The notes: a model not told the origin generated them from the letters alone. Counted from the first letter of the stretch, positions 11,684-62,652 are shown. The stretch: DNA of 64,000 nucleotides from Macrostomum lignano (GCA_002269645.1 NIVC01001367.1:186001-250000), one strand, 5' to 3'. Numbers and translations: made by a program.

Positions 11684-11717
11684 ATGAACATTTTGCAATT
11701 AGAACTGTGGCGGCAGC

Positions 11718-25700: not shown

Positions 25701-26221
25701 ACTTGCTCACTCACTCATGAACTCACTCATGAACTCACTCATGAACTCACTCATGAACTCACTCATGAACTCACTCATGAACTCACTCATGAACTCACTC
25801 ATGAACTCACTCATGAACTCACTCATGACTCATGAACTCATGAACTCACTCACTCACTCATGACTCATGAACTCATGAACTCACTCACTCACTCATGACT
25901 CATGAACTCATGAACTCACTCACTCACTCATGACTCATGAACTCATGAACTCGATTCTTTATTCAGGTGTCGCCAATCCTGAATTTTCCCTACGCGCCGG
26001 TGAACGAGGCCTCTGCCAGGCTGGTGGCGGAGCAGGACAAGGCTGTGAAGGGGCAGCGGGTGATCAGGCAGCGCCACCGGCTCCGCGGAGTGCCCGTAGC
26101 CGAGTGCCACTTCCAGCAGCACTCGGGCGGCTCCGGCGTGTTTTTCGTTTACGGCTTCGAGAACCGGCTGTACATTGAGCAGTTCCCACGGGCCGGTAGC
26201 TGCTGCTGCTCGCTGCTCTGA
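16773..26221 (+). CDS. SSUH2: SSUH2 (ssu-2) homolog, 387 aa, 7 exons: 16773-16923, 17799-17874, 18609-18738, 18833-19021, 19834-20000, 25296-25491, 25967-26221
   Basis: All introns are GT-AG with matching phases and the CDS totals 1164 nt. The protein has [55 protein letters not shown], DnaJ-like CxxCxGxG repeats and the C-terminus [24 protein letters not shown], collinear with SSUH2 as recalled. Confidence 0.9.
16944..17295. repeat. 14-bp tandem repeat in SSUH2 intron 1
   Basis: Unit CTATCCGCCCTCTG. Confidence 0.95.
17325..17777. repeat. 11-bp tandem repeat in SSUH2 intron 1
   Basis: Unit ATGCCAGTCAG. Confidence 0.95.
18232..18581. repeat. 24-bp tandem repeat in SSUH2 intron 2
   Basis: Unit GGGACGGACTGGCTGGGACAGGCG. 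Confidence 0.95.
19050..19772. repeat. 16-bp tandem repeat in SSUH2 intron 4
   Basis: Unit CACCCACTCTAC(CCAA/ACGA/CCGA). Confidence 0.95.
20018..21392. repeat. 24/22-bp tandem repeat in SSUH2 intron 5
   Basis: Unit CTCTGCCATCCACTCCGGACTC(CA). Confidence 0.95.
21410..22663. repeat. 54-bp tandem repeat (~23 copies) in SSUH2 intron 5
   Basis: Unit CATAATGCAACAGACCTAAAGCAGATTTGGCCATAGAAAAATCAATyCTGCAsr. Confidence 0.95.
23040..23053. promoter_or_regulatory. Candidate RFX X-box
   Basis: GTTGTCATGGCAAC, one mismatch from the palindromic X-box GTTGCCATGGCAAC, in a non-repetitive island between two arrays. Confidence 0.45.
23359..25250. repeat. 26-bp tandem repeat (~70 copies) in SSUH2 intron 5
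   Basis: Unit CCCAGTGCCATTCACTCCCACTCTCA, with variants changing along the array. Confidence 0.95.
25505..25950. repeat. (CACT)n plus 12-bp ACTCATGAACTC repeat in SSUH2 intron 6
   Basis: Directly visible compound array. Confidence 0.9.
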
Positions 26222-36190: not shown

Positions 36191-36838
36191 TAAAACAGTT
36201 TTTTTTGCTTTTGAATTTGTTGTGTTCATAAAAAATCAACTAATCAAGTCCAATTGTAAAGGCTTAGTTTCAACAGAATTAATGACTTGAAAACTATTTT
36301 TATTGAAACCGGTTCAAATAGGCAAATAGTGAATCTGTGTTCAGCTTACAATACCATTCCAAAGCCTAAATTTCCCAATCTAGTGCTCCAAGCACTAGAA
36401 TCCTCCAAGCTCCAAGCACTGTAGCTCCTGCGCCAGACTGTGAACATGCTATAAGGAACTATGAATATTTTCTAAAAATAGCTTTAGCTGCTGGCTCTCC
36501 CATGGAAAACCCGTCTGTAGTGTACAGCTTTTTAGGCTATTCCAAGGCAATGCCGTGGAATATACTGGGCACTGCCATGGGGTTTCCACACCGTCCAACT
36601 TCTAAATTTGTTTCAAAACCTATCTGCTCTTTCAGGCTGAACGAGAACTGAGCAGTCTACTGCTTCGTGCATTTGAGGAAGAGACTGGCATCTCTTTGCT
36701 CGTATCCTTTTGCAAGCGATTTGCCAGGAGCCATATTATCAGGTATGCAGGAAAAAAGTGAAAAATACGTATCGAAAAAATACTTTTGCTTTTAGTAGAT
36801 ATGAACATTGATTCTCATATTATTTTATGCTTCATCAG

Positions 36839-38902
36839 ATGCCTGTGTTAGAGATTCTGACTCAGCCGGTTGAGCACCACCGTCCCCGCTACGAGTCGGA
36901 GATCTCAACCAACAAGATTGGCGGCCTGCTGCTCGGCCGCGGCTCAACGGGAAAGGACAACAGAGCCTTCATCAAGCTGAAGATCAGTGGAATCGACCCA
37001 GCAGTGCACCGCGAGCTGCAGTTGTTTGTGTGCGTGGCCAGTCAGAATGGAGAGCTGCATCCGTACTACCTGCACGGAGACGGCTGTAGAGATGGCTGCT
37101 TTTTCTGGGTGAAGCAAGTCGACTATCGGACCCCGAGTGAAATTGAAATAAAGTAATGCTCAAATTTTTAGAGCTTCTGTTAAAATATGTTTGCCAACTT
37201 TTAAGACAAGAGTAGCATAGAAGCTCGGGCGTATTGATCACGCCGCACTCGGATTTCAGGTTTTTCGGCACAGATTCAACGATAACGTCGCAGACAAGAT
37301 CGAGAAGTTAAACTCTTTAAGCGCAGCAGTTACTGTACCAGTGGGAGAGGCCACTAGAATTTAAAGGTACCGCAGATTCATTGCAGAACAGAAGGAAACG
37401 TTCATGATAGAGATGCTCGTTGTATTGCTTCCAGCTGCTCCCTATAGTTTCAGGAGAATCTGTCCTGTCATAGTTTTTAGGACACTTCATGGCTATGCTT
37501 TGCACGTTTACAATTTTATGGCTGTGCCCTGCGCTTATTCTATAACTGCTGCAAGGCTATTGCGCAAGTATAGCAAAAAGATGACTGACGCACTGGAACC
37601 GTCCGATCTTTCAGGTTCGAAAGGCTGGCTGTTATCCGTTGCAAGACGTCGTCTGATGCCATTCAGGAGGCACTGAAAAAGCGCGAGGAACAGGTTCAGG
37701 GCTATTTTTCCCCAACGGTGAGTTTTTATTAATTGGATAATATCTTCGTCCGGTACTTTACCTTGAATTCTCGAACTTGAATTGCTCATCCAGGTCTGAA
37801 CCAGCCGGCTCAGAAGTACAACGGCAGAAATTTGGGCTCGATTCGTCTGGTTTTCCAGCTCAGCTTCTCTGACAATGGCACTGGCTACTGCCACTACCTG
37901 CAGCCAATATTCAGTGATGTGATCGCCGATATCAGTACGTACGTTTTCATCTCTAAAATTTCTTCAGTTTCTTTTCACACTCTTTAGTAGCAGTTGGATC
38001 ATTTTCATTGGCTAGTTTTGGGCAGAAAGTCCAAACAAATAGTACGAATTATTTTGTTCTTTTGAGCCTCCGTTTCTCATTCTCTTGCTTGAGTTTCTGC
38101 TTCATCGAGCCCTACCGAGAGCTTTCTGGACAGTTTCAAGAAAATAATGAATTAGCCGTCACTACTGTAGTACTGTACTACTCATAGCTTCTATCAAGAG
38201 TTGACGTCAGTAACTCATTTTTAAATTCTCCAGAAGAAGTCAGGGTCATTTGCCCGGAGTCATTGAATCCTCCCGAAGTTGCGCCAAATGGAGGCGAAAT
38301 CGCCATCTATTGCACAAATTGTAAGGGCGCAGCTTTTGTTATTAGAGATACGAATTTGTTGATTGAATCGTGCTTTCTAAAGACGAGCCAAACATTTATA
38401 AATTGTTTCAGCACAAATGCCTATTAAAGAGGAAATTCGAGTGGTATTCGAGCTCAGTGTTGAGAGCAGTGAGACAACTGTGCGCGTTTCTGGCTGTGTC
38501 AAAAAAGTGATGAAGGTAAAACCTGTCTGCAGTTTATACTGACAGACAATAGAGGCTTTTGATGCGCCAGGTAACTTGACAAAAATCTGCGTACCTTGCA
38601 GCACCTCATCATCGTCACTGTGCCAGGCGTTCAGATGTACGTGAATACCGAGCGGACGAAGGCCAAAGTGCTCGTCGAACAGAACTTGGCCAAAACCGAG
38701 GACTCAACAAATTCGGCGCTTACTATCGCGTTCCTTCCTGGAGGCTGGAGCACAGGTTGTAAGCAACTCGCAGTTTCGAAATTTTGACTTTTTGATCCAA
38801 ATGAGCTCCAATGACGGAAAATAAATCTTCTGCTTCAATTAACAGGCCAGGACAGCTCGGAAGCGACCCGCTACTGCCTCGCTTGTGCAGGAAAAGACTT
38901 GA
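36839..38902 (+). CDS. Rel homology domain protein 1 (RHD + IPT + basic motif), ~316 aa, 7 coding exons: 36839-37152, 37615-37716, 37794-37934, 38234-38320, 38412-38515, 38602-38758, 38856-38902; apparent +1 frameshift near 37705-37712
   Basis: LEILTQPVEHHRPRYESE, LHPYYLHGDGCRDG, FERLAVIRCK, NLGSIRLVFQ..LQPIFSDVIAD, GGEIAIYC, KEEIRVVFE, HLIIVTVP, then RKRP. A non-coding exon lies at 36636-36742. The last-exon acceptor is ambiguous (38846 versus 38856). Confidence 0.8.
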
Positions 38903-39466
38903 CCTTCATGCCCCTGGCCGCGAATTGAATGCGAGCGCGAATCACTCGAAGTTCACGTCGGTGGCAGTCTGCGTTTTTTCAGCAGACAGCAATTTTCGAG
39001 TCAGGAGACTCAGACTTTCGGATTACATTCCAAAGGATCTTCTTTGTGCTAATGGAATTTATTTCCTGAGATGACTTAAAGAAACACAGCAACACTTACT
39101 CATAAAAATCTTATAGATATGGATCTTACTGGTAAATCTAAAAGAAATTGAGTAGAGAAGAGCAGAAATTTTTCTTTTATTTAGGCTCAATGAAATTTAC
39201 TTTTTTAAATTAATATATAAGTTATAAAAAAGGAATATTTTTCATTTTTTGTCTATTTTTTATTTTTATAACAACAGCAGGCAAAGGACACATTTGTTCC
39301 TCTCTGTATCCATAGTTTAAATTTAGCCTTTATCCATAGTGTCCTATCACACTGCATAGAGACATCCTAGAACAATTTAACGAGGATAGACACAGATTAT
39401 TGCCAGAACATGGTAAATGTAATCAAATGTGTTCTGTACCTGTGTAAATGTGTTTCAGCAACTCAA

Positions 39467-41574
39467 ATGTCCGAAGCGACTCCCAAGCTGTCTCTGTCCA
39501 TCGCTCATCAGCCGACGAAAATCCATCGATTTCGCTACCTGAAGGAGGTCAGCGATGGCCGCATGGGCAGTGTTCTGCGCAGCCGCGCTCCTGGAGGCAA
39601 GACTCCTGTTGCAGTGACTGCGACTGTCCAATCTGTGAGCCCCGGCTGCAAGCTGAAGCTGGTCGGCTGCACCGTATTCGAGGACCTGATGACGCACCCG
39701 TTCTACCTGACTGGGGACGACTGTCGGAACGGCGTGTTCGAGAAGGAGCTGAGCAGCGAATCCGGGCCATCCGAGCAGGAAGTGAGGTGAGTCTCAGTCT
39801 TTATCGCAGTCTAGTTTATCTGAGGAGTGTTCACTTTTTCCTTCTCGGAAGAAGTCGAGCATGGGTCAGTTTTAGAAGTGTGGAGAGGCAAGACTTTTTG
39901 CGAATTCCGTTCTCCTGTTGCGGACCCTGTATTTCTGGGCTTATGCTGGCCCACACAGCATAAAAAGTGAGCTAAAAGTGCAAGTATGACCATAAAGACA
40001 TTAGGAAACAAAGTATTAGAAAGAGATGAAGGATCTCCTGTTGCACCTACTACCTGATTGATGCATTCTGCTTCTACTCAGGCTGGAGAAGGTCGGCATC
40101 GTGTGCACTCCGAAAAAGCAGAGGAAGTCGAAAGGCAAGCCGAGCAGAGCCTCTGAGAATGGAGTTCCAGCACATATCGGCATGCAGAATGGAACCGCAC
40201 AAGAAGATAACTTTTACATGGAAAGAATTCAAAAGTACAACTTTTTTGGAAGTAAGTCGTGATTTAATAGACCTTCAAAACGCTGAATTTGTCTTTTCAA
40301 GAAGGCAAGCTTTCATTCATCCGCAGAGCCACCAAGGCAGAATCCATTCCAAGGCAAAGACATCAACAAACTCAGACTGGCCTTCCAAGTGTTTTATCAG
40401 CTGCCGGGCTTAAGCGACTGGCTCGCTGCGGACTGCAGACCTGTGTACACCGAAGTCATTGGAGATGCCAGTGAGTGAACTTTCCCTTTAACTTTGCGTT
40501 AGGTATTTGCAATCAGGTAGATGACCTGAGAGACTGTTTGACTTAGAACAAGAGCTTTTTCTTTTCAGAGATCTTCTCCAAAACGGAAATCGAGTTAATC
40601 ATTCCGGACTCGGTGTCGCGTCCCGACCAGGACGTGTGGCTTTACACGAAGGACGATCTGCCAGGTATGCAGCTTTTATTTTGAGTACCAAATTGTGCTT
40701 TTTTGAATGCCTGAATGCAAATAAATCTGATCACAATTGCAGTTCAGACCGTTTCCGAATTAACTGTGCGGCTGGAGCATGAATCAGAGCCGTTTATGAT
40801 TATTGAGCTGCAACCGAAGGAGTTGAAGAAGGTAAAGTCTCAGAGTTCATGTGTAAACTGATGCAGAAATGCGTTGTAAAGGACTGAGAATTGAGGAAGT
40901 CTATTGCGTTTGTTGGAACCGATGCACGTGTTTAATGACGCAATCTCAGTCAGGACTGAGTGAGCAGTATAGTTACCTATTTAATTTGTACTGTACATGA
41001 CGGTGGAACACATGCATGGGTTGTACGATTGCAGCCTCTGAAATCACTGGTTGTACTCGTAATCAAAATTAAGTTCTTTAATCATGCAATTCCGATAGCC
41101 TTTTGTCCCGGTTATGTTTTTCAGAAGCTGCTGAAGATTAGTAGTACTGAGAAAACCTTCGTCAGTTTGTCAGTTCGTGCGTTCATGTCTCTAAAGCGTG
41201 TTCCTAATTCCTTTACAGCACCTGGTAGTGTTCAACTTCGAGCAGCCGATCTTGACAAACGCTGTTTCCGGCTCATTTTCTGTGACTCTCGTGGACAAGA
41301 AGAATGATGACTCGAGCGAGCCGGTGAAACTGGAGCTGATTAATGATCCGTCAGGTAAACCGTTTGGTTACTAAATTTAATGCTGTAAATCCTTTAACAA
41401 TACTTTTATTATCCATGATGATTTTCAGGCTCAGGCCCTGCAAATAAGAAGATCAGGCGTGATGAGAAGCCAACTGTTTCTCAAGATCCCATGGATGAGC
41501 TTCTTGGCACTTTTCTGGATGGTAATGGAGACCTGCAGGAGCTGCCGGAGCTTTACGTGGAGCCTCGTGCTTAG
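39467..41574 (+). CDS. Rel homology domain protein 2 (RHD + IPT + NLS-like motif + acidic tail), 366 aa, 7 exons: 39467-39786, 40082-40251, 40327-40470, 40569-40664, 40743-40831, 41219-41354, 41429-41574
   Basis: Open 1101-nt CDS with phases 2,1,1,1,0,1. Motifs: IAHQPTKIHRFRYLKE, THPFYLTGDDCRNGVFEKEL (cf. RelA [20 protein letters not shown]), LEKVGIVCTPKK, DINKLRLAFQVF..PVYTEVIGD, HLVVFNF, NDDSSEP, NKKIRR, DPMDELLGTFLD. Confidence 0.88.
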
Positions 41575-44171
41575 AACTGACCGAATCATAAAGACCAAGA
41601 GTTGAGTGAAAAAAAGACTAAGGCTTTCCAACTTTTGTTTTACTCAGCATCAATGCTCTAATTTGAATTTTCCGCTGTCAGCATCGGCTGTTGGCTTTGA
41701 GTTTTTCGAGTCTGAAATTTTAACATTAACTCAGTCGCCTCAAGTTGGCTGTGCAATGCGACGCGGCGTTCTACTTGTTGAATATGTTGGTTCGCTTGTA
41801 CAAGTGCACATGCTGAGCTCGTAATTTTTCAGGAGGAATTCTTCCCTTTGTTTAATTTAATTTTTCTATCATCTGCAACAGCTAATCACTTTTTGGAAAT
41901 GCAGAGCCATAATGCCACTTTCTTCGGAACGCGTACAAGGACACTGATAATGCCAGCATTCTTCATTTAAGTTCTTAATATTGAGAGCGTACTATCTTGA
42001 AATGTCGTTGTTTGCAACTGTTTATTTATTTAATTTTTTAAAAGCTGAAGTATAGTCTCACTATTCCCAGAGCAAATTGCTTCGCTTTTGAATGCACACG
42101 CTGAGAGTACTCGCACAAGTAATGTACGCTAATAGCTCCATGTTCTGACGGCTTTTCCATGGTTTTTCCACTTCATTTTGTTCTCTCTATGTCTGTGTAC
42201 GTATAGTTTTGCGTGCATACACTGTACTCTCATTGTACAGCCTACTCTGTCGTTTGCGGAGTTCCTTATTTTCCTTTTAAAAGCGGCCAGACTGCTGCTG
42301 CATTATTGCAGTTTTGTCGCTGTTTTCGTCAAAAAAGTACTGCTTCGAAAGTAAGTGTTTTTTTTAACGATTTTGTCTTTAAATTAAAATTGAAACCTAA
42401 TTTCTTCCAGCTTGATCATTCACTCTATGTATTATTAGTGTTGGGCAAATTTTTTAAACGTAAAAAAATTCAAGCAGTGCTAATACATATGATTCGGCGT
42501 CTGAGAAATGTTCTCATTCCCAATTTTTCACGACTCACAATTACCCCCAACTTCACAATCACAAAAATTTGCATCCCCATATTGCATATGTTCGATTTTT
42601 CATAAATTGCTTCTTCCATAACTTTTGAATTGCTTGGTTGCGTGGTTAAAGTTGTGTCTGTGAGCAAATTAAATTGCCTGCTTTTCAAGCTTTTAATGAA
42701 ACTTTTATGTCTCTTCATGGAGTTAGTGGGCTTTGAAGTGTTTTGTTGGCCTTTCTGCCAAGCGTTGGCCGGAGACAGCGTTCATCTACATTTTTTAATT
42801 TTTTAGCTCAATATAGCTAGCCTCCAAATTAGTTTTCAGAAACTGGCACACGCTTACTGTATCACCGTTAAGTTAAAGGGCAAAAATAAAACTGCTAGCT
42901 CACAGTTGGTGCGCATAAAGTGCAACGGTTTTCAGGACACTCGCTATATCCATAAATCGTTTGCTGATTTTCAGAGGGAAGCGAAACACCTCAAAATGTA
43001 TATTCTTCATATTTCAGTCCCAAATACTATCCCAAATTGAGGTTGTGAAAGCGTGTGCACAATGTGAAGATTGAGACTCTTGTATAGATTAGGGATTGGG
43101 AAAAACTTGGGAGAGAGTTAAATAAAGGGTTGTGAAATATGAGGATTGTGGAGTTTAAAGTTGATGAAATATGGCGACTGCCAAGTTTAGTGCATACATA
43201 TTTCAAGCACGCACCGAATATGCCGCAGTGATTGATGCGTCCTGTGTGTATCCTGCGATGAATAAGACGCTTCACTTGTATGAGTAGCTAACCCAGAAAT
43301 CTCAGGTTATTTGGGGCTACAGGCTTCATCAAAGAACTGTCCTTTTTGATTTGCAGTGAACTGAAGGAGTCTCTTGGGTAGCAATGCTGGCAACTCTCGA
43401 ATAAATTAACTTCTAAGGGTCGATTTTGCACTGATGCACGGATGAGAATACATTTTCTGAAGAATATTTTGACTGCTCATTAAGCAAGCGATTAAGCAAC
43501 AAATAAAGCATTATCAAGTTACGAGTAGATTATCAAGTAAGCAGTATCGGTGGAACATCTGTATGGAATTAAAAAGCTGCTGTGGAGCAAAGCGTACATG
43601 TACTGGGTCACAGCTCGTGCGGCATTTCTGTGTCCAAGATGACTGCCAATCTACAGTGGGGTTACAAGGCTGGATTAAAATAAGGCATTAACAACAAGGC
43701 GTATCCCGGCTCATAATGGTTTAAGTTGTAAGAAGCGTTTAGAGGGACGTAATAATCGAACGTGTGCGCATAGTGCAGCCATTTTTCTGAGCAAAAAATG
43801 ACTTTTGAGGTTCCGCATGCGCTATTGTGACTTATAGTTTCGAAAACTTTATTGACTGAAACTGCTGACCTGTTCATTCACAAATTATGGTTTGCGAACA
43901 AAGCTTTGAGCGGCAATAAAAACCTGTTGATTCCGGAGAGTTCTTCTGATCACTCTACGTCTCTCCTCACTCTTCTTGGTCCAGCTCCCCGGTTCTCCTA
44001 CTCGTAGCTTTGTTTTCTCTTCTAAAATAGAATGTTTAGCAAACAATGAAAACTAAGAGGTTTAAATTCTGAGATTGTAATCGCTTTGAGTATCTAATAA
44101 GTTGCTCATTCTGAACCAACTGATTGCACTGCTCTTGCAGAACTGTATAGTTTCTAATTTTTAATCTGCTA

Positions 44172-44400
44172 TGGGTTGTGGCATAGTGGTCAGTTCGAGC
44201 GTCAGACTCACGACCGAGCTGTCGAGGGTTTGATTGAGACCCACTCAAAACAGTTTGTGTTTTTGAGCAAGACCACTTAACTCTGCATTGCTTCGGTGCA
44301 CCCAGCAATAAAATGTTTGCTAGAATTAGCCGGGGTTATTAAGGATGTGTGTGGCGACCCTCCTGACAGCTGCACAACAACTGCTTCCCCACGCCTTGCC
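44172..44400 (+). mobile_element. tRNA-derived SINE
   Basis: A box TGGCATAGTGG (44179-44189) and decayed B box GGTTTGATT (44227-44235), followed by TGTGTTTTTGAGCAAGACCACTTAACTCT..CACCCAG, which resembles conserved CORE/Meta-type SINE central domains. The 3' end is approximate. Confidence 0.7.
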
Positions 44401-44423
44401 ATATTTTTATCCAGCAAACGCAA

Positions 44424-46456
44424 ATGTCTGAACCGGCTCCCAAGCTGTCTCTGTCCATCGCTGATCAGCATCAGCCGACGAAAATCCATCGATTTCGCTA
44501 CCTGAGGGAGGTCAGCGATGGCCGCATGGGCAGTGTTCTCTGCGCAGCCGCGCTCCTGGAGGCAGGCATCCAGTTGAGGTGACTGCGACTGTCCAATCTG
44601 TGAGCCCGACTGCAAGCTGAAGCTGGTCGGCTGCACCGTATTCGAGGACCTGATGACGCACCCGTTCTACCTGACTGGGGACGACTGTCGGAACGGCGTG
44701 TTCGAGAAGGAGCTGAGCAGCGAATCCGGGCCATCCGAGCAGGAAGTGAAGTGAGTCTCAGTCTTTATCGCAGTCTAGTTTATCTGAGGAGTGTCCACTT
44801 TTTCCTTCTGGAAGAAGTCGAGCATGGGTCAGTTTTAGAAGTGTGGAGAGGCAAGACTTTTTGCGAATTCCGTTCTCCTGTTTCGGGCTCTGGGCTTATG
44901 CTGGCCCACACAGCATAAAAAGTGAGCTAAAAGTGCAAGTATGAACATAAAGACATTAGGAAACAAAGTATTAGAAAGAGCTGAAGGATCTCCTGTTGCA
45001 CATACTACCTGATCGATGCATTCTGCTTCTACTCAGGCTGGAGAAGGTCGGCATCGTGTGCACTCCGAAAAAGCAGAGGAAGTCGAAAGGCAAGCCGAGC
45101 GGAGCCTCTGAGAATGGATTTCCAGCGTATATCGGCCTTCAGAATGGAACCGCACAAGAAGATAACTTTTACATGGAAAGAATTCAAAAGTACAACTTTT
45201 TTAAAAGTAAGTCATGATTTGATAGACCTTCAAAACGCTGAATCCGTCTTTTCAAGAAGGTAAGCTCTCATTCATCCGCAGAGGATCCAAGGGAGAGGCC
45301 ATTCCTAGGCAAAGACATCAACAAACTCAGACTGGCCTTCCAAGTGTTTTATCAGCTGCCGGGCTCAAGTGACTGGCTCGCTGCGGACTGCAGACCTGTG
45401 TACACCGAAGTCATTGGAGATGCCAGTGAGTGAACTTTCCCTTTAACTTTGCGTTAGGTATTTGCAATCAGGTAGATGACCTGAGAGACTGCTTGACTTA
45501 GAACAAGAGCTATTTCATTCCAGAGATCTCTCTAAAATGGAAATCGAGTTAATCATTCCGGACTCGGTGTCGCGTCCCGACCAGGACGTGTGGCTTTACA
45601 CGAAGGACGATCTGCCAGGTATGCAGCTTTTATTTGGATTACCAAATTGTGCATTTTTGAATTCCTGAATGCAAATAAATCAGATCACAATTGCAGCTGA
45701 AAAAGTTTCCGAATTAACTGTGCGGCTGGAGCAGAAATCAGAGCCTTTTTTGATTATCGAGCTGCAGCCAAAGGAGTTGAAGAAGGTAAAGTCTCAGAGT
45801 TCATGTGTAAACTGATGCAGAAATACACTGCATAATTACGCAATCTCAGTCAGGGCTGAGTGATCAGCATAGTTACCTATTCAAAAGCACTGTAATAGAA
45901 GGTGGAACAGAAGCACGAGCTGTACGTTAGCAACCCCTCAAATCACTGCTTGCAATCCAACTTAAAGGTCTTCAATCATGCAATTGCGATAACCTTTTAT
46001 CCCAGGTATGTTTTCAGAGGCAACGGAAGCTTATTTAATGTCGATCAGAAAAATTTTGGTCATCTTGTCAGTTCGTGCGTTCATGCCTCTAAATGTTCCT
46101 AATGCCTTTACAGCACCTGGTAGTGTTCAACTTCGAGCAGCTGACCTTGACAAACGTTGTTTCCGGCTCATTTTCTGTGACCCTCATTGACAAGAGGAAT
46201 GATGACTCGAGCGAGCCGGTGAAACTGGAGCTGATCAATTTGTCAAACGATCCGTCAGGTAACCGTTTTGTTACTAAATTTAATGGCGCAAATCCTTACG
46301 CATTATTTTTATTTTCCATGATGATTTTCAGTCTCTGACCCTGCAACTAAGAAGTCCAGGCGTGATGATCCCATGGAGGAGGTCCTTCGCACTTTTGTGG
46401 ATGATAATGGGTACCTGCAGGTTCTGTCAGAGCTTTACGTGGAGCCTCGTGCTTAG
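44424..46456 (+). pseudogene. Rel homology domain protein 3, a recent duplicate of RHD2 with a +2 frameshift in exon 1 (pseudogene or assembly error); later exons 45037-45206, 45282-45425, 45524/45526-45618, 45697-45785, 46114-46258, 46332-46456
   Basis: Exons and introns align with RHD2. An extra CT near 44538-44541 gives a premature TGA. Exon 4 has a 1-nt deletion that is compensated only if the AG at 45524-45525 is the acceptor. Other indels are in frame and the terminal YVEPRA* is kept. Confidence 0.75.
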
Positions 46457-47681: not shown

Positions 47682-50600
47682 CTAGGCCAGCTCCCTGGCG
47701 TTCACGGTGATGCGACCGAAAGACTGTCCGAAGCGGCGACGGTGGCCTGCGAAAGTCAAAGGTGGGACAAGTTGGCGCTGTTTTGCCGTGCTCAGAAGCT
47801 TTTCGCATGCAGAATCCCAGTGCAGAATCCCAGTACAGAATCCCAGTACAGAATCCCAGTACAGATTCCCAGTACCGATTCTCAGTACAGAATTCCAGTA
47901 CAGAATTCCAGTACAGAATCCCAGAGCAGAATCCCAGTACAGAATCCCAGAATAGAATCTCAGAACAGAATCCCAGAGCAGATCCCTGGACGTAGCAATC
48001 GTGTACAAGACAATAATAAAAAATAGAAAAGGACTATATACAAAGTTCGAGCTACATCATCTCTGTTTTGAGATCCCAACTGCTAGAGAAAGTGTAGGTA
48101 TATCAGCAAGCAGATTTCCAGGTCTACAGAATTGCTTGAAAAAAATTGATTATCAGAGACAAATATGCTTAGTGCACATCTTATACTAAAATGTAAGTGT
48201 AGTCAGCGCTGTAAAAGTACCGTTAAGGAGACCAATTCATGTAGTTCAGAGATTTTAGGGAATTAGTAGCCAACCAACTTCTAATAAATTGTGGCCTATT
48301 TTGAGCGCCTTCTGCAGAAATGAGTCCGCCTGCTCACCTGGGATGTGTCCGTAATAGTTCGGCAGGAGCCCCTCGCACTTGCGGTAGATGACCCCCTCGC
48401 CACGCCTCCCCCGCAGGCGCCCCCGCCCTGCCTGGCCCGCCGCCTTTTCCTCGCCGACAGCCTCAGCGTCCGAGGCCTCAAGCCCGGCCAGCGCAGCCGC
48501 GTGCAGCCGCCTGGCCCGGTCGAAGTCCTCCAGAGCGTCGTGTGTGAGCACCGGGTAGGTGCCACCCAGGCGTTGCCGCAGGCGGGGCACAAAGCCGGAG
48601 TAGCCGGATATAAAGTAGCGCTGCTCGCTGTCCCGGTCCATCAGGTAGGGAGAGTATCCGGGGTAATAGTAGCGCCCGGACGGCGGCTCGTCCAGAAACT
48701 TCGGGTGCACCGAGATGGCCGTTTTGGGCTGCCAAGCGAAATTGAATGCCTGAGACTAAACTGTTCTGCATGCATGTATTTAAACTAGGTTTTGCTAATC
48801 AGATTGCCACACTTCGTCAAAAGTGGACCTACCTCTTTTCTAGCTGGGAACACTGTGGTCTGAAATAAATAGAAGAGCTGAGGTTAAATATCTGCTCAAG
48901 TCACTAAAATGAACAGAGCAGCTGAGCTGAATGTCTGCTCAAGTCACTAAAATGAACAGAGCAGCTGAGGCTGAATGTCTGCTCAAGTCACTAAAATAAA
49001 CAGAGCAGCTGAGGCTGAATGTCTGCTCAAATCACTAAAATGAACAGAGCAGCTGAGGCTGAATGTCTGCTCAAGTCACTAAAATGAACAGAGCAGCTGA
49101 GCTGAATGTCTGCTCAATTCACTAAAATGAACAGAGCAGCTGAGGCTGAATGTCTGCTCAAGTCGCTATAAAATGAACAGAGCAGCTGAGGCTGAATGTC
49201 TGCTCAAGTCACTAAAATAAACAGAGCAGCTGACACTGAATGTCTGCTCAAGTCACTAAAATGAACAGAGCAGCTGACACTGAATGTCTGCTCAAGTCAC
49301 TAAAATGAACAGAGCAGCTGACACTGAATGTCTGCTCAAGTCACTAAAATGAACAGAGCAGCTGAGGCTGAATGTCTGCTCAAGTCACTAAAATAAACAG
49401 AGCAGCTGAGGCTGAATGTCTGCTCAAATCACTAAAATGAACAGAGCAGCTGAGGCTGAATGTCTGCTCAAGTCACTAAAATGAACAGAGCAGCTGAGCT
49501 GAATGTCTGCTCAATTCACTAAAATGAACAGAGCAGCTGAGGCTGAATGTCTGCTCAAGTCGCTAAAATGAACAGAGCAGCTGAGGCTGAATGTCTGCTC
49601 AAGTCACTAAAATAAACAGAGCAGCTGAGGCTGAATGTCTGCTCAAATCACTAAAATGAACAGAGCAGCTGAGGCTGAATGTCTGCTCAAGTCACTATTA
49701 CAATTAAGATTTCCATGTCTCCAAAAAACTTGCCTCCGAGAAGCAGAGCTTCGGGTTGCCGCCCACTGTCTGCTGGGCGCGCAGGCGGATCAGCTCGTTG
49801 TTGAGGCCGGCCGCCTGCTGAGGGCTCGCTTCAGAGGCTGCCAGAGATTGGTTCAAAAAAGGGCTTGACGGCTGAGTAGAACAGACTCAGAGATAGACTA
49901 TTACCACTCTAAGCCACCTGGCATAATTTAGTAACTGCGCGGCATTGAGCACTGCAGCGATGAGAGAACAATTAAGGGATTAAGGCGAGTCTCAAGCTTG
50001 ACGGGGTCGTCATTAATTCTGTCCGCTCGCCTCGCTGCACAGAAGCTTGTTAGCAGTTTGGCAAAATGGTATAATGATAAAATTTTCTATTGTTTGAAGC
50101 TGTCTGTGAGTAGGGGTTAAATGAAGGGCATTTATAGCTGCAGAGTACGAGTACTCGGTCCCTAGGGAGCCACGAAAGCGTAATATAATAGTAAGTAAAA
50201 CACACGCTTCTATTTCGAGTAGCTTACATGTGCCTTTGTTGCATATGCTTTTTGCCTCCCAAATCTCAGTGGTGTTTTATCCAGAGGGTGAAAGTTTGGT
50301 CTGAAGTGTTTCTTGCAAATGATCACGGTCATGGGTCACGGTTTAATAACCTTCACATGTATTGCTTTTGTCAGCCCAGCTGAGAATAAAGCCACCCAAA
50401 ATGATAATCCTGCCTACGCCGACCGCGAAGGGCCTGGCTGCGTGCAGCCTTAGTCTATGGGCCATAGACAATAAAGGACAAGCAAAGTGATAAAAAGCCA
50501 TCCAATGTGAGAATCGATTGGTCTATGCGTCGTATTCTTTTATTTTTATACCTTCTGAGCTTCTGAGCCATATGACTAGCCAATCCTAGCTTATCCTTTA

Positions 50601-51441
50601 TAGTATATGGCTCATAGACTAGGCTGGACGCAGCTAGGCCCTTCGTATTCAGCGTAGGCAGGTTTCTCACATTGGATGGCTTTCTATCACTTTGCTTATC
50701 CTTTATAGTCTATGGCCCATAGACTAAGGCTGCACGCAGCCAGGCCCTTCGCAGTCAGCGTAGGCAGGATTCTCACTTTGGATGGCTTTATTCTCAGTTA
50801 GGCTGACAAAACCAATACTGTTAAGCCTTAGAAATGAGACAATAAGATTTAATTGGTGAAAATCTAGGGTAAAAACTAGCAAAAATAACAAAAACCATTT
50901 GATGAACTTGTGCAAGTATCAACCTTCAGTGCTAGCCATGGACAACTGAAAAACCATTTGATGAACTTGTGCAAGTATCAACCTTCAGTGGCTAGCCATG
51001 GACAACTGAAAAACCATTTGATGAACTTGTGCAAGTATCAACCTTCAGTGGCTAACCAAGGACAACTGAAAAGTTCCTTAATCTAAGTTTCTAGTGCGGC
51101 CTGTAGCCAACAGATTGTCACACGTTGAAAACCAGCTTTCGCGTACTTGAATTTCTTGAAGAAATCCCAGTTGATGTTAACAGGCACGCTGGAGTAGGGT
51201 TCGAAATCTACATTAATTGATTGATTAAAGTGCACTGCTTTGCCTGTAAACTACTCAGCCAGTGAATGCTTGGCAAACAGATACGAGTAGCTGATGGCTC
51301 ACGCTTAATCGGCGGCAGTCGCACCGGCTCCTGCGGCGACTCCTTCATGCGGGTCGACACGTTGAACCGCCTGGCCGCCGTCGAGTCGCCGTGAAATGTG
51401 TGCGCTCGACTCAGCATGTTGGAACTCGCTTTGTAGAACAG
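47682..51441 (-). CDS. CIMIP2/FAM166-family (ciliary microtubule inner protein-like) gene, exons 51441-51303, 49837-49734, 48728-48338, 47746-47682; 5' end uncertain
   Basis: Motifs YFISGYSGFVP..LGGTY, IYRKCEGLLPNYYGHIPG and RFGQSFGRIT. Phases match (1, 0, 1), and the second intron is GC-AG (GAG|GCAAGT). Confidence 0.75.
47809..47985. repeat. 13-bp tandem repeat (intronic)
   Basis: Unit CAGAATCCCAGTA. Confidence 0.9.
48890..49695. repeat. 44-bp tandem repeat (~18 copies) filling the GC-AG intron
   Basis: Unit GAATGTCTGCTCAAGTCACTAAAATGAACAGAGCAGCTGAGGCT; CTGCTC/GAGCAG stem. Confidence 0.95.
50359..50818. mobile_element. Foldback/MITE-like element with long imperfect TIRs and an internally duplicated right arm
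   Basis: GTATTGCTTTTGTCAGCC..AATAAAGCC..CCTGCCTACG..GAAGGGCCTGGCTGCGTGCAGCCTTAGTCTATGGGCCATAGAC is mirrored at the right end, where the unit occurs twice. Confidence 0.7.
50891..51070. repeat. 60-bp tandem repeat (3 copies)
   Basis: Unit AAAACCATTTGATGAACTTGTGCAAGTATCAACCTTCAGTGGCTAGCCATGGACAACTGA. Confidence 0.9.
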
Positions 51442-54169
51442 CTGCGGAATAGCGGAGCAGTGGTTCACCGAAAACTGACGTCAATTGCTTGTTTTTTTTA
51501 TTTTACAGTGTATTATTGCAGCCAGTGCACGGCGAGACTGCGCCTGGATTGGGTGTTGCGCAGTAATACACGCGGCGACACACTTATCGTCTTAACTCAG
51601 AGACGCACTAAAAAACGAGACGACTGGACGCTCAGGCTTAAGGCTTAGGCCTGGTGCACCGTTAACCTGGGCAGGGGCAATAAACAGCAAAGCAACATTC
51701 GTGGGTAGGAGACGCAATCCAGCCAGTCTAAGAGAGCTTGAGCAGGTTGTCAGGCTGGCCTCGAATTTGAGTAGCTGCCACTGTAGACTCCTGAGAAGAT
51801 AAATTGCTTCTCAAGCCCTCCGTCTGGCTTCGGCTGTAGAAGAGGGGTGGCTATTATATTTTTTATGCTAGTTTGTCTGCGATTTGTCTTTTGGAGCTTA
51901 TAAAGCCTGAGACAGATTCCTTCTAGAAGAAGAGTTATTTATAAAGAAGAGTTACTGCCAAATTTAATAATTGTCTTTATTTTGTCACCGGTGTTGGTTG
52001 CTGCTGCGGACATCACTGGAAGCTTCGTGTGTCTGTTACATGTATATTACATGCCTGACTTCTAAGGTACATTAAACATCACAGCTGTGTCTTCTCCACA
52101 AGGTCTGCCATGCATTTTTTTCTGCTTATAAAGCCTCTATAACGTTCTGCACAATAGTGCGGTAAATTGTCAAACTATGAAAACTGTGACCCGACTGGCA
52201 TTATTAAATCTATCAGCTTATCAACCCAAAGAAGACGGCGAAATGAAATGGCAGAGAATGTAAAAATGACACAACTTATACACAATGTGCACTACACACT
52301 TCTGACTTTTGAACCAGACTATGGGCGAGATAAGATTTATGGGTCTTGAGAGGTTTTATCAGCCTGTTCCAAGCAATAACACCTGTCTGTTACCTGTTTA
52401 TAATTACATGGAATTTAATAGAAGTGACGGCCCTAACCAACTTTTAGATTTTGACCTGAGCACATACATAGCTAAATATTAAAGTACGCGACTATTCTCA
52501 GTGTTGGTAATGTTATCCAGAATACTACTGCATATCACAAGCACAGCCATGCAATGCTGAAAACTCTTGCTATTTGAAAAACCACTATGGGGCTGTGAGT
52601 TTTTTAATTATTTTCATTCAGAAAGCATACAACTTCAAGAAAATCCTCATAATTATCTGATCGGCTCGGCTTCGACTCGACAATTAAGAGCGAACCTTAG
52701 GCTTTTGCCCGGATCGCGTGCGCTGCAGTCGCGCCGCTGAAGCTGCAGGACAGAAGCTCATTTTGCTCTCGCTTGTACCAGGTGTCAATTGGTCAGCTCG
52801 CTGCCAGGGATGCGACGCGCGTCGAACGCAGCGTCCCTGAGAGCTAGCTCGATCGTACATCTAGTAGGTCCCTACGTTTGTACAGCAGGGCGGTCTCCAC
52901 TATACTAGATTTGTATACAGCACTACAGGTTACTCAGATATTTTTTCAGATCCACTAAAACACTGGAATCTGGATGCACGTGTACATGCATACAAAAGTA
53001 CATCTACTCTTAACAAAAGTTCACGCATACATGTATATGACTCGTTTAAAGCGCATCGTATTCAGACCCTGATCTTTCTTCAGTGCAGCTGCCAGCACCA
53101 GGGTCTAAAGCACAGTAGGATCCACAGTATTTCGTCATGTGATTTATCATCCGTCTAAAATTCTGAATGAATTCAAGCACCGGCTGTTCGCGATATTTCC
53201 AGGTGCAGGTCTCTAAGAATACACACGTTCATATGTAAAGCTACCAGACCAACTGCATGAATCTTGATGTCAACCGAGCCAAAGAAAAAAATCTATATGA
53301 ATCGAATCAATTCAGGGAATTCTGTTACACATACTCGTCTGGTCGATACAAAATCTAGCTAGCTTTTGTTCATCGCATCATTCCGCTTACATTTCCTAGA
53401 AAGTAGTCTTAACAGGAAACTACTCGTACGTCTGTTAGTGTAAGTATAAGTACGCTCGTACTGTAATGTCTCTAGGGTATGGTAGTGGCTTTAGTATTTT
53501 ACACAGAACATAGTTATACAGAATATCAAGCATAGAATGTAAGGCCTATTGCCCTGTTATTTGCTTTCAAAGCCAAGCCAAGGCATATAGAAATTAGTTC
53601 CTAGGACCTAGCCCTAGTCATTTTGTCATTCATCACCCCACCTTTTATAGGTCGCTTCGTCATCTTAATTAATTAAGCATTCACCAACTGAAGAATTTCA
53701 AAATTTTCTAGTTTATTTATGCTATGTTTATTGCTATGCTAAATCATGTCCTTTTTTATAAAACATTAGCATTAGCCTATCTACCATTTAGATTTTTTAT
53801 TACAAAGTGAGAATCCAGATAATAGGCCTAGAAAATATTTGTTCTAAGAAATATTTGTTAATATTGTACTTTAGTAAAGTCTTTACAAGACTATTTATTT
53901 TACTTCTAGTCACAATTTTCTTACAGGCCTATGACAAAAGAATATAAAAACTTTACTAGGCTTAGCAAGCTAAAAATTCACTTTTTCTTAGAAAGGTTAT
54001 AGAAATTGGTTAAGGCCATGTTACTTCCAGGCTTCCAGGCTATCAGGAAGACTTCCAGGCTTATGCCTATGTTAGATATTATCTTATAATCTTTGTTATT
54101 AGCTATCATGATAAGCTTTTCAAAGTTTATAAAGATGCTACACTAGCCTAGTCAATGATTTATTGATAG

Positions 54170-55700
54170 TAGGGCCTATTTAAAGTTCTGTGACAAAGAA
54201 TTTCCCCTAATCTCAGCTCCTCAAACTGGCCAGCCATAGTCAACAAGGACAGCAGAGCTGATTGAAACCTATTAAGCTCTTGTTGAAAAGGATCCAAAAA
54301 TTAGTGTCTAGGCCTACAACCTCATTAACTTTTTGGAAGTTGGAAAAACAATAGTACACAAAATTTTGACTGAGGATTTGCACCTTTAAAATGTTTCTAC
54401 CCCTATTGGAATAAGTTTTAAAAACCCACGGATGCGCAACACTGGTGCCAAAATTGTGCCTTCAAATGTGCGACGCAACATCAAATTTTGTTGACTAGAG
54501 GGGGCAGCGACATGCGACAACACTGATGTCTGTTGACCAAATGACTAGGGGAGGGGGGATGCCACAGCAGCCACATTGCACGTTGCCCACCTAATCAATC
54601 ATGCACTTAGACTAGTCATCCTAGCCCCAAGGGGGGAGACCACATGACCCACATGTCTTCACATTTCATTTAGATTTTTATTTTTTATCTGTGTCTTACA
54701 TCATAAATAAAAGTATAAAACAAACATGACTGATGACTCACACTTCATTGCTCAACTTTTCCCAGTTCCCACAGACTCCAAGACCCACAGTAGATGTGTT
54801 GACTGCCGACTGTTGTCCATCAAACAATGCAGATGGGATTGCTGTTCGTTGGGAGTTGGGATGTGAAATTCAATGCGAATTCAATGTGGCACAACACACC
54901 ACTTGACACCATTGTCGCGCAACGTGACACCAGGAAAATCTGAAAATGAGATGGAAGGTCGTCTACATTTTGTCAACTTATTCCAATAGGGGTTTCTACT
55001 GTCTGGTTTCCAAATGCCCAATCCAAAGAGAACAAGACTACTTGTATCAATTGTGTATAACAAATTCGTAGGCTTTTTTACAAGGGCATAGAAAACTTTT
55101 GTGACAAGTATGTGGTGAAAGATGAGATATGGGTGTACCTGATCAATACTGGCACAAAGCAAAACAACAGGTGCTGGCTTGGCCAAGGGGATCATTGACC
55201 CCAGGTTGTTAGGCACTCAGTTGGCAATGCAAAAGACAATGCTTCTAGTTGCTTTTACTCCTAACAAGTGCTTCTCTATTGAATCCACAGCCCCAAAGCA
55301 AACTATTGATGCAAATGGCATAGTTGAGTTCATTTGGCACACTGGAGACCTATGGCATACTCTCAGGTCAAGGCCAATTCATCTTTTGGATGTTATTTGG
55401 CAGTGGGACAATATGCAACCTGATGTGGCTCATTCTGTGCAATAGTGCATAGAGTCCTATAGAGTTCAGCTGGTGTTTCAGAGTCCTTACAGCCTAGACT
55501 TCAATTTGTGTGACCATTTTTTCAGTTGGATGAAGACTGATTTTTCTAGGCAAGTGTTCAGTGACCACAATGAAGTTTGAGAAGCTACATTGCAATGGGC
55601 AAGAGGCCTTGATGAAGATTGCTTGAAAAGAGAGGTTCAGTGACTTGTTGACCATTTCCAAGCTATAATCAATATAAGGGGAGATTACATTACCAACTAG
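54170..55700 (+). mobile_element. Heavily decayed mariner transposase relic interrupted by a MITE
   Basis: GQP*STRT..LVEKDPKISV, LEVGKTIVHKILTEDLHL*NVS[insertion]TVWFP..VVKDEIWVY, KTMLLVAF, IWQWDNMQPD and SPYSLDFNLCD..RGDY are collinear with the mariner HTH and DDD catalytic motifs. Confidence 0.85.
54401..54991. mobile_element. 591-bp non-autonomous DNA transposon, 17-bp TIR, 8-bp TSD
   Basis: GTTTCTAC|CCCTATTGGAATAAGTT ... AACTTATTCCAATAGGG|GTTTCTAC. Removing it rejoins the mariner reading frame. Confidence 0.9.
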
Positions 55701-56457
55701 TATGTTATTGTGTTTTCTGATAGTTCTGACTGGTTTTCAAATACATTCTCACAACTTTCTGGATAGCCATATTCTAAGAATTCCTGTTTTTATTATTATT
55801 CCTATGATCCCATGCAGCTATATGCCTAGAATCAAAGTTTTTCTGCGTGCTTGATAAAGTGTCTAGGCTCATCTATTTTTAGGTTTATTCTAATATAGGG
55901 TGCAGACTGCAGATTATCAGAAAATCTAATGTGCAACATAAGCCAAATAAGAAAAAAAGATATGAGACAAAAGTTAAAAAATATAGACTTTGTCAACTTT
56001 TGCTTTTTCTAGGCCTAGTAGACAACTTTAAGCTTGGGGTTAACATTTTTTGGCCTAAAACATTAAAGCAATTCCGGTTTATGCTTGTAAGCCAAGGTAG
56101 ATATACTTGTAAAATCAGGCAGTTATAGATGCCATGCTTTGTATTTTCAACATTCAGAAAGCAGAAAAGGTTTTTTTATTTCCATTTAAATTTCCTTTTG
56201 AAGCTCCAAATAATTAATTGATTTCACCATACCTAAAATACCACATAGGGAGATATGCTTCTAATAGATACTACTAACAGTAGCATAGCTTCAGTTTAGT
56301 TGTAGGGTCTAGGGATGTTTGCCTTTTTAAATAAGCAGTCTATATATGCTCGTACTAGCTAGCAACTTGTATACTTACCATCATATTAGAAAATTAATTC
56401 CAACTACAACATAATTTGCTAAAAGTACATTCTTTGGCTCCCAGCCTCCCATGCAAG

Positions 56458-57547
56458 CAGTGTTGGGCACAATACTAAAAAAGTATCGATGAAAACCAAT
56501 ACTCCGATACCCTTTCTGAAAAAAGTATCGCCAATACCTGAAAGCCCGATACCCAAATTTGAGTATCGGCAATACCCTAATTCCGATACTCAATTCCAAT
56601 ACCCATTTTTTGCAAAAAGAATGCTTAATGAATATAGATGCATATTATTTAAGCCTCTCAGACCTTCTCCTAGATTTTAAAGGCAAATAAAGCAAGCTTA
56701 GCATTGTTTTAAATCACAAAGCCTTCAGTAAAAGAAATAGAATAAAATTAACGAATGAAAACCAACAGTTGCAGTTGCCACTTTAGTCGATCATTAACTA
56801 TTTACTACCCTCTGTAGTCATTCTTCTTTAAATCTTTACACCTATTAGCACTGTCATTCTTTTAGTATAGTGTGGCGGCCTGTCAGTCTGCAATTGGTGC
56901 ACCCATACACTTAGCCTCAGCCTTGTTTTTTGGATTGAGCACACTTACATGTACACATGTACTCAGCCAGCCAGACCGAATGCTTTAAGCCGAGGTAGAG
57001 ACTTTAAAGCCTTACCTCTGATTGGGCAACACATCGCCCCTTCACTCTCTATACATGTAAACCTAAGTAAATTGCGTCACTTCTCTTCCCTTTACTCAAC
57101 TTGTGGTCTCCTAAATATATTCTTCCAAAATAGTGGATTTATTTATTTATTGCTGTATGCAAATACGCATGCACATATGTTTGTATGTACGCATCATTCA
57201 CTAAATTGCTTGAGTTACTAGTGTAGCACTAGTGTATTTGCTTACTTTAAGAACTTACTTTAAGATCGAAAGTATTAATTGTTTCAGCTTCATTGGCCTA
57301 GAAGTGAAGTATTTACCAGGTATCATTACTTTCTGTAAAATTACGCAACTGTTTCATTCATTTTAACTAAATTTTGATTGTTTGCATACTCCAAATTTTA
57401 AAAGTATCGGACTATCGAACTATCGGGAAAATTTGAAAATTGTATCAGAAGTTACCGAAGTCCGATGCCGCCAAAAAAAGTATCGACTTCCGATACCCAA
57501 AAGGTATCGCCGATAGTATCGGAGCATCGTAATTGTGCCCAACACTG
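56458..57547. mobile_element. hAT-type non-autonomous element, 1090 bp
   Basis: TIR CAGTGTTGGGCACAAT / ATTGTGCCCAACACTG, 8-bp TSD CATGCAAG / CATGCGAG (7 of 8 match), and subterminal GTATCG/CGATAC repeats at both ends. Confidence 0.85.
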
Positions 57548-57601
57548 CATGCGAGCGCAGTGCAAGTCAAGCTGTTTGAATTTCAGCAGCACTCTGCCAT
57601 C

Positions 57602-59294: not shown

Positions 59295-59811
59295 GCTGCT
59301 GCGGTGCCAGCGTCTGCTTGGTGACATTGAATGTTGCCCTCAGTGACTCCAGTGCCGGCCCAGGCTGCTGATTTTATAAGCTCCGGTCCCGGCATTTCCC
59401 CTGTTGTCAGTCAGTCAGCCTGCATGCTGCAATTACCAGGTGCTTTAAATAAGTTCATTGCTTGTCGAGTCAGTGTAGATCGCCTTGGGAGTTCCTCTTC
59501 AGCAGCCAAAAAATTTTTCAAAATAAACAAATTGAATAATTGCCAAACCTGCTCTGTCGGTGCGATTTTGCAAATTTTGCGATTGATTGCGCAATTCTTC
59601 TATTTCATTTCTGTGCACACTGTCTGCTGCAGCTTGAGTCGTCACCCAACAGGTTGGGATACTTGATAAAGTTTATGAAGAAATGTTTCTTTCAGTTCCG
59701 TCCTTCAACTGGTTTTACGTTTCGAATTGGGCACTCGAAATGGTCGTTGCCGATAGGATTTTCAGCTTTAGAAGTATGACAGTTTTGCAACCAATGTGTT
59801 CTGTGCCCGTC

Positions 59812-62436: not shown

Positions 62437-62652
62437 ACACGCCATGCCAAACATGTTTGTAATCATGCAACATCACGCCATGCCAAACATGTTTGTAATC
62501 ATGCAACATCACGCCATGCCAAACATGTTTGTAATCATGCAACATCACGCCATGCCAAACATGTTTGTAATCATGCAACATCACGCCATGCCAAACATGT
62601 TTGTAATCATGCAACATCACGCCATGCCAAACATGTTTGTAATCATGCAACA
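62437..62652. repeat. 36-bp tandem repeat (6 copies)
   Basis: Unit CACGCCATGCCAAACATGTTTGTAATCATGCAACAT. Confidence 0.95.

Follow-up and report, generated by a model that had tools for sequence, protein, structure and literature searches.

The flatworm Schmidtea mediterranea has been reported, in a 2026 paper, to carry seven divergent Rel homology domain (RHD) factors in addition to a conserved NFAT5 (PMC13563047). Knockdown of the factor closest to Drosophila Relish was lethal and left transgene expression unchanged, and its immune role is unclear (PMC13563047). In a 2018 review, a Schmidtea NF-kB gene is described as being expressed in intestinal phagocytes and as lethal upon knockdown (PMC6043800), and a 2024 survey did not find p50/p105 in Platyhelminthes (PMC11432056). 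Literature searches returned no paper on the RHD genes of Macrostomum lignano. The locus analyzed here lies in a 64,000-nucleotide stretch of M. lignano DNA (NIVC01001367.1:186001-250000; hereafter the window, from whose first letter positions are counted unless another contig is named) and consists of three Rel-like genes, RHD1, RHD2, and RHD3, placed on the + strand between positions 36839 and 46456. An earlier note, drawn up from the sequence alone, had taken this cluster for an overlooked, lineage-specific Rel expansion should the host be a flatworm, on the premise that NF-kB is absent from the well-studied flatworms. The host is indeed a flatworm. The premise is outdated in light of the Schmidtea reports (PMC6043800 and PMC13563047).

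Models rebuilt from the sequence bore out three same-strand genes of seven exons each, with GT-AG at all internal splice sites. Window positions 34632-56456 correspond, without gaps and at 100% identity, to NIVC01001367.1:220632-242456 of the Mlig_3_7 assembly (GCA_002269645.1; locus L001), in which transcript-based models name RHD1, RHD2, and RHD3 BOX15_Mlig033322g1, g2, and g3, respectively. All three genes were thus already in GenBank, and g1, like many other family members, is labeled “RHD domain-containing protein” in UniProt, so that they cannot be called overlooked. The search for further copies that the earlier note had proposed revealed many additional RHD genes in M. lignano; within the window, tblastn found none outside the coordinates of the cluster. 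The Macrostomum RHD expansion appears to have been annotated by machine but not described in the literature, and the cluster is a real, modestly interesting lineage expansion rather than an overlooked discovery. We consider it probable that it represents a tandem array of M. lignano-specific, fast-evolving, compact class II Rel genes belonging to one transcriptional unit, in which RHD2 is functional and RHD1 and RHD3 are decaying.

Comparison with Pfam RHD_DNA_bind (PF00554), at a cut-off of 27 bits, gave matches of 56 bits for RHD1 (E 6e-15) and 41.6 bits for RHD2 (E 1.7e-10). For RHD3, the database product (P0003) carries a precomputed PF00554 match marked “weak”. All 13 M. lignano family members scanned exceeded the cut-off. 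The absence of ankyrin repeats expected from the earlier note was borne out, the Pfam scan returning no such match in the trio, whose open reading frames (ORFs) end 0-45 residues past a basic cluster; in this respect the three proteins differ from class I NF-kB (p105/p100/Relish). Inspection of motifs was equally in line with the earlier description. A Rel-type HPxxLxGxxCxxG motif is present (HPYYLHGDGCRDG in RHD1 and HPFYLTGDDCRNG in RHD2/3), and the RRxS motif is absent from RHD1, RHD2, and RHD3. Of the DNA-contacting residues in the canonical recognition loop (R-x-x-R-x-R-x-x-C-E), the Arg, Arg, Tyr, and Glu are kept. In place of the Cys, RHD1 has Ser (RPRYESE), RHD2 has Lys (RFRYLKE), and RHD3 has Arg (RFRYLRE). 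This Cys was found in none of the M. lignano family members aligned. The proteins of the trio begin only 8-20 residues upstream of the loop. The basic clusters KKIRR of RHD2 and KKSRR of RHD3 align with the nuclear localization signal (NLS) of c-Rel and Dorsal and constitute a putative NLS here. Of the basic motifs in the earlier note, these two are in frame, whereas RKRP of RHD1 is not.

The closest described counterparts are the class II Rel proteins, namely insect Dorsal, Gambif1, c-Rel, RelA, and RelB, which gave the best sequence and fold matches to the M. lignano family. Shared features comprise the two-domain Rel homology region, the RxRYxxE loop, a core resembling HPHxLVGKxCxxG, a VRLxFQ strand, a basic NLS directly after the dimerization domain, and the lack of ankyrin repeats. 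The differences are also considerable. Identity to the M. lignano proteins is only 18-25%, and the M. lignano loop, in addition to carrying Ser or Lys in place of Cys, is 2 residues longer after the Glu. RRxS is missing, no long C-terminal transactivation region follows the NLS (0-60 residues), the dimerization domain is too divergent for Pfam RHD_dimer, and RHD2/3 contain an insert of ∼40 residues (at ∼120-165, with low pLDDT in the model described below) between strands of the N-terminal domain. At the C terminus, a short acidic/hydrophobic motif (DELLGTFLD..., DLLTSFA, DALRSIGLEEDFMAFL) was seen in RHD2/3 and several paralogs in place of a long region; judged from the alignment, it may be a minimal activation motif.

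When RHD1 alone was searched against Protein Data Bank (PDB) sequences, c-Rel, p65, and p50 were found, and no NFAT chain appeared up to E = 10. A family profile built from eight members matched RelB (4.9e-21), c-Rel (5.7e-17), p65 (6e-15 to ∼1e-14), p50 (∼1e-12), and Gambif1 (7e-12) in the same database, with alignments extending into the dimerization domain. A structure was modeled with AlphaFold for P0001, a paralog 91% identical to RHD2, from an alignment of 114 sequences; an alignment of 8 sequences had been uninformative, with a mean predicted local distance difference test score (pLDDT) of 46.5. The resulting model had a mean pLDDT of 79.9 and a predicted template modeling score of 0.68. 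Both β-domains were confident, pLDDT being mostly above 85 at residues ∼215-320 (the dimerization domain), and an insert at residues ∼122-168 was disordered. Foldseek comparison of this model with the PDB placed RelA, RelB, and c-Rel at the top (E ∼1e-17, target template modeling (TM) score 0.75-0.80, ∼320 columns), with RelA at TM 0.75 and c-Rel at TM 0.80, and isolated p65 and p52 dimerization domains gave TM 0.67-0.69. The sequence matches and the modeled fold together indicate that the trio, which lack ankyrin repeats, are two-domain Rel homology proteins of the Rel/Dorsal type.

That the genes might instead encode NFAT/NFAT5-type proteins is suggested by the recognition loop itself. The NFAT loop reads RAHYETE, and the RxRYESE loop of RHD1 and of the group formed by P0006-P0011 differs in having Ser where NFAT has Thr. 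NFAT5 (TonEBP) and NFAT also share the Rel homology fold, and Pfam RHD_DNA_bind covers NFAT as well. Beyond the loop, however, similarity is negligible: NFAT chains were missing from the single-sequence search and reached only E 0.09-1.2 in the profile search, confined to 24-26 residues of the loop. The structural match is also poorer (TonEBP 7.7e-12, TM 0.55; NFAT 9e-11, TM 0.40; both below Rel), the M. lignano proteins lack the N-terminal regulatory region, and their named nearest relatives are all Dorsal, Rel, or p100. An NFAT-type identity is therefore highly improbable and was rejected on the PDB sequence search, the profile E-values, and the Foldseek ranking; the Rel/NF-kB assignment of the earlier note stands.

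RHD2 (BOX15_Mlig033322g2; 39459-41574, + strand) is the only intact gene of the trio. Its coding exons (39467-39786, 40082-40251, 40327-40470, 40569-40664, 40743-40831, 41219-41354, and 41429-41574) join into an uninterrupted ORF of 366 aa with GT-AG at every intron and intron phases 2,1,1,1,0,1. The earlier note had ascribed this phase pattern to all three genes; it is uninterrupted in RHD2, but RHD1 and RHD3 carry frame-breaking indels. The AG acceptor at 39457-39458 probably marks the start of the mRNA. The predicted protein comprises an N-terminal Rel homology domain with the loop IHRFRYLKE, an Ig-like dimerization domain, KKIRR, and a short acidic tail (DPMDELLGTFLDGNGDLQELPELYVEPRA). Among database paralogs, P0001 is 91% and P0002 89% identical to it. 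The public g2 gene call (L001 4830-6230; window 39459-40861) does not splice at the exon 5 donor but continues into intron 5, where it terminates at a stop codon at 40859-40861 after 284 aa. The public protein consequently lacks ∼93 residues, which include the last part of the dimerization domain, the basic cluster, and the acidic tail, and the seven-exon model of the earlier note is better than the database entry.

RHD1 (BOX15_Mlig033322g1, PAA68869.1; 36839-38928, + strand) is frame-disrupted. Splice and frame analysis placed its exons at 36839-37152, 37615-37717, 37794-37934, 38234-38320, 38412-38515, 38602-38758, and 38846-38928. A single frameshift had been allowed for this gene in the earlier note, but two frame corrections are needed. 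The end of exon 2 reads GGCTATTTTTCCCCAACG, compared with GGCTGTCTTCTCCCCAACG in the paralog P0004 from a second locus (L002, described below), and is 1 bp shorter near 37703-37708. Through the annotated exon 2/3 junction, the frame continues as “...GYFSPTV*” to a stop codon at 37797-37799, and the resulting 140-aa ORF is exactly the GenBank product P0024. In exon 6, a 7-bp tandem duplication (CTGGAGG/CTGGAGC) lies at ∼38739-38752 (CCTGGAGGCTGGAGCACAG compared with CCTGGAGCACAG in P0004). The tail accordingly reads QDSSEATRYCLACAGKDLTFMPLAAN rather than ARTARKRPATASLVQEKT, and because the duplication shifts the last exon, RKRP (38861-38872) is out of frame here and in frame only in P0004. An alternative in-frame acceptor for exon 3 at 37805 restores the ORF on paper; it is absent from the transcript-based annotation, has a poor polypyrimidine tract, and was not adopted. 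The marked divergence of RHD1 from RHD2/3 was borne out, RHD1 and RHD2 being 24% identical.

RHD3 (BOX15_Mlig033322g3; 44424-46456, + strand), which the earlier note had presented as intact, is likewise frame-disrupted and has in-frame stops relative to RHD2. Alignment of its coding sequence with that of RHD2 gave exons at 44424-44750, 45037-45206, 45282-45425, 45524-45618, 45697-45785, 46114-46258, and 46332-46456. It also showed three indels in exon 1 (+6, +2, and -1) and one each in exon 4 (-1), exon 6 (+9), and exon 7 (-21). Owing to the +2 at ∼44537 and the -1 at ∼44606, the first 39 codons, among them those for the loop IHRFRYLRE, do not share a frame with the rest of the coding sequence, and stop codons ensue. 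This accords with the GenBank product P0003 (302 aa, “partial”) starting only at CTVFEDL. In the annotated transcript, exon 4 uses an acceptor at 45502, upstream of 45524, which compensates exactly for the exon 4 deletion and adds “QELFHS”; the corresponding insert in P0003 (QELFHSRDLSKMEIE) matches window positions 45502-45546. P0003 and the window are 100% identical over the 3′ part of exon 1 and over exon 7. After frame correction, RHD3 is 88% identical to RHD2.

The BOX15_Mlig models of GenBank derive from a genome-guided RNA-seq assembly made with StringTie/TACO (PMC5730564). In that annotation, M. lignano transcriptional units were split into genes at trans-splice or poly(A) sites, and the suffixes g1-g3 denote genes of one unit (PMC5730564). 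The labels Mlig033322 g1/g2/g3 therefore indicate transcription of all three genes, from a single precursor. Inspection of the 40 bases before each start codon (36799-36838, 39427-39466, and 44384-44423, + strand) revealed an AG acceptor 0-8 nucleotides before the ATG in each case, in the contexts cttcatcag|ATG at 36839, gtttcag|caactcaaATG at 39467, and tatccag|caaacgcaaATG at 44424. These acceptors are consistent with spliced-leader trans-splicing of a single polycistronic unit. The public models of the trio are poor, with g1 reduced to 140 aa, g2 running into intron 5, and g3 partial. Related entries are also composite: the GenBank protein P0002, from L002, is a chimera of exons 1-3 of one tandem copy and exons 4-7 of the next, and the UniProt protein P0170, from the earlier ML2 assembly, has RHD1 fused to exon 1 of RHD2.

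Beyond the cluster, 1.84 billion representatives were searched exhaustively with the profile, which yielded 256 matches at E of 1e-3 or lower. All of the 16 best representative clusters (E below 1e-28) came from M. lignano, and the nearest non-Macrostomum proteins were insect Dorsal, RelB, and c-Rel at E 1e-16 to 1e-12, together with a p100-like protein at E no better than 1e-16. Word-based homolog searches returned M. lignano proteins only, the distant relatives being reached solely through the exhaustive profile search. The sources of 36 clusters, out of the 150 best representative matches listed, were checked, and no Schmidtea protein was among them; the seven RHD factors of S. mediterranea (PMC13563047) are comparable to the M. 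lignano family by description. A rough neighbor-joining tree put all M. lignano proteins in one clade, RHD1 falling with P0006-P0011 and RHD2 with P0014-P0023. Identity to the P0005-P0009 group is 37-41% for RHD1, and identity to the other groups is 22-30% for RHD2/3. The lineage-specific expansion proposed in the earlier note is upheld by this M. lignano-only clade, but it is not a local event of three genes: the compact RHD family comprises at least about a dozen deep clusters at 50% identity, and other tandem arrays exist, such as the adjacent genes PAA90847, 90849, 90850, and 90851 on one 986-kb contig. Other M. lignano RHD proteins (among them Mlig001933g1/g2, Mlig011721g1, Mlig000125g1/g2, Mlig020664, Mlig028098, and Mlig026896) resemble the trio in compact layout, Cys-less loop, basic tail, tandem arrangement (on other contigs), and membership of the clade; what distinguishes the window is that two deep subfamilies are joined in one transcriptional unit. 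Family-wide, the Cys-less loop is accompanied by a basic cluster that lines up with the Rel NLS and is followed by no more than ∼60 residues, often with an acidic/hydrophobic motif. The Cys-less loop and “minimal” layout, being common to all members, are therefore traits of the family and not specialities of this cluster. In the 90% identity cluster of P0020, the UniRef entries A0A1I8JHQ7, A0A1I8HQK5, and A0A1I8IFN0 (∼250 aa) are named “Inositol-pentakisphosphate 2-kinase”, which is probably a mis-annotation or the product of a chimeric gene model.

A paralogous locus, L002 (NIVC01000020.1:337347-364600), is 92-94% identical to the window region and has a different layout, with an RHD3-like copy, its downstream sequence, a 5′-truncated RHD1, and two RHD2/3-type copies, in segments at L002 positions 2656-4794, 8149-9451, 10007-11948, and 15302-17254. 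Its RHD1 copy, the source of P0004, has no exon 1, its sequence starting within exon 2 immediately downstream of a 44-bp minisatellite. When exons were projected onto the L002 copies with MAFFT, each of the three RHD2/3-type copies showed seven exons with canonical splice sites; two of them have a full ORF, and the third stops three codons early. The ORF is thereby kept in 4 of the 5 RHD2/3-type copies of the window and L002. Exon indels among the ORF-intact copies are all multiples of three (6, 3, 9, 3, and 9), only RHD3 of the window having indels of 2, 1, and 1, and the intron indels of these copies are mostly 1, 2, 4, 5, 7, 8, or 13. Pairwise ratios of nonsynonymous to synonymous divergence (dN/dS) were 0.65-1.04 at dS 0.06-0.10. 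The RHD2/3-type copies thus keep their reading frame under weak amino acid constraint or diversifying selection, as is seen in young birth-and-death families. A unit of ∼67-70 bp that occurs once between RHD2 and RHD3 (43041-43110) is present in ∼10 tandem copies at L002 13429-14100.

Several of the observations made weigh against the reading of one functional and two decaying class II Rel genes, and some concern the decay itself. Mlig_3_7 was assembled from PacBio reads with Canu and polished by Pilon with Illumina DNA and RNA reads, and the genome is redundant and hard to polish (PMC5730564). Some of the indels fall in short runs of T or C or in a CT repeat, and the pseudogene status of RHD1 and RHD3 could in part be an effect of assembly or haplotype. 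P0170 agrees fully with exons 1 and 3 of window RHD1, but its sequence at the exon 2/3 junction, “GCLLPNG”, shows no frameshift; the exon 2 frameshift is accordingly either haplotype-specific or an assembly error. Taken to its end, this line of argument would make all three genes intact and every RHD1 and RHD3 indel an artifact of assembling a genome with duplicated blocks that are 92-95% identical. The low-complexity contexts (TTTTT at 37703-37708, the CCCC/CCC run, and CTCT), the ML2-based P0170, and the redundancy and difficult polishing of the assembly (PMC5730564) are compatible with that, but it is unlikely on other grounds. P0170 retains GGWST, which provides an independent sighting of the 7-bp duplication of RHD1 and shows that it is not specific to one assembly. 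The exon 2 difference amounts to about three changes within 10 bp and is no simple homopolymer slip, and the RHD3 acceptor at 45502 offsets the exon 4 loss exactly, which suggests that the deletion is real. RHD3, moreover, has three separate indels that are not multiples of three where the four other copies have none, and the polishing made use of Illumina DNA and RNA reads (PMC5730564). Decay of RHD1 and RHD3 also fits a birth-and-death family in a partly duplicated genome.

The remaining points of this kind concern the assignment to Rel and the functionality of RHD2. Pfam RHD_dimer (PF16179) had no match in RHD1, RHD2, or P0001, and matched only 4 of the 16 sequences scanned, three of the 16 being canonical references that are probably among those four. 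The domain went unseen by Pfam because it is too divergent; the IPT domain of the earlier note was missed in the Pfam comparison and is supported only by the profile alignment and by the model of the 91% identical paralog. That model is of the paralog rather than of a window protein, and the alignment behind it is dominated by canonical Rel sequences. The neighbor-joining tree is rough, carries no support values, and includes neither NFAT nor other flatworm sequences. A dN/dS near 1 is, in addition, typical of decaying genes. Along with exon divergence of 4.5-7.4%, close to intron divergence for several pairs, with transcript models that are partial or chimeric (g2 into intron 5; two copies in P0002), and with a dimerization domain beyond the reach of Pfam, these ratios would be expected if the entire RHD2/3-type subfamily, RHD2 included, consisted of transcribed but functionless recent duplicates under neutral drift. 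Such drift is nevertheless distinctly improbable. An ORF of ∼1.1 kb and canonical splice sites at six introns are kept in 4 of 5 copies, and exon indels of the intact copies, as opposed to those of introns, come only in multiples of three. Subfamilies that are only 22-30% identical retain the HPxxLxGxxCxxG core, the basic cluster, and the Arg, Arg, Tyr, and Glu that contact DNA, and the structure model is confident in both domains.

Under the favored reading, of RHD2 as functional and RHD1 and RHD3 as decaying, the array would be transcribed as the single unit Mlig033322 and then processed into three mRNAs. RHD2, as the functional member, would possess a canonical two-domain Rel homology region, dimerize via the Ig-like C-terminal domain, and contact kappaB-like DNA through the Arg-x-Arg-Tyr-x-x-Glu loop and a linker Lys. 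KKIRR at its canonical position would direct nuclear import, and the short acidic/hydrophobic tail may activate transcription. RHD1 would belong to a deeply separate subfamily and RHD3 would be a young duplicate of RHD2, both in this haplotype being decaying copies or, at best, sources of truncated products. Redox control of vertebrate NF-kB is known, and loss of the recognition-loop Cys predicts insensitivity to such control. Heterodimers with altered DNA specificity and IkB-independent control, as proposed in the earlier note, are speculation; no ankyrin genes were seen among the gene calls around the cluster, and the M. lignano proteome was not searched for IkB or IKK.

Sequence surrounding the cluster is rich in repeats. 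Window positions 10703-31758 and 48876-64000 contain dense, long minisatellite arrays with periods of 4-118 bp and lengths of up to 1.9 kb each, in agreement with the reported 15% tandem-repeat content of the M. lignano genome. Arrays at 19046-25930 are C-rich and account for the strong negative GC skew there (-0.2 to -0.58). Downstream of the cluster, a gene of 233 aa with a faint CMI2B-like Pfam match was called on the - strand at 47682-51417; it covers 44-bp and 60-bp minisatellites at 48876-49697 and 50890-51072.

A more far-reaching proposal is that M. lignano has swapped the usual one to three Rel/NF-kB genes for a large, diversifying network of compact, Cys-less Rel proteins encoded in trans-spliced polycistronic arrays. 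In such a network, RHD1- and RHD2-type subfamilies would be co-transcribed and form combinatorial dimers with new DNA specificities, the genes undergoing birth and death under diversifying selection. This is unlikely, but if true, a transcription system for innate immunity or stress would have been rewired in this lineage. The practical gain from the present analysis is modest and consists of a full-length RHD2 model (366 aa compared with the public 284 aa), a map of the broken copies and their lesions, and placement of the cluster within a wider family. Flatworms serve as models in regeneration and parasitology, their innate-immune transcription is poorly understood, and planarian NF-kB homologs have been hard to pin down. 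Because transgenesis and RNA interference are available in M. lignano, the Macrostomum Rel expansion would be a tractable entry point, and it could show how Rel signaling has been remodeled in flatworms and whether it can work without the redox Cys, the protein kinase A site, and long activation domains.

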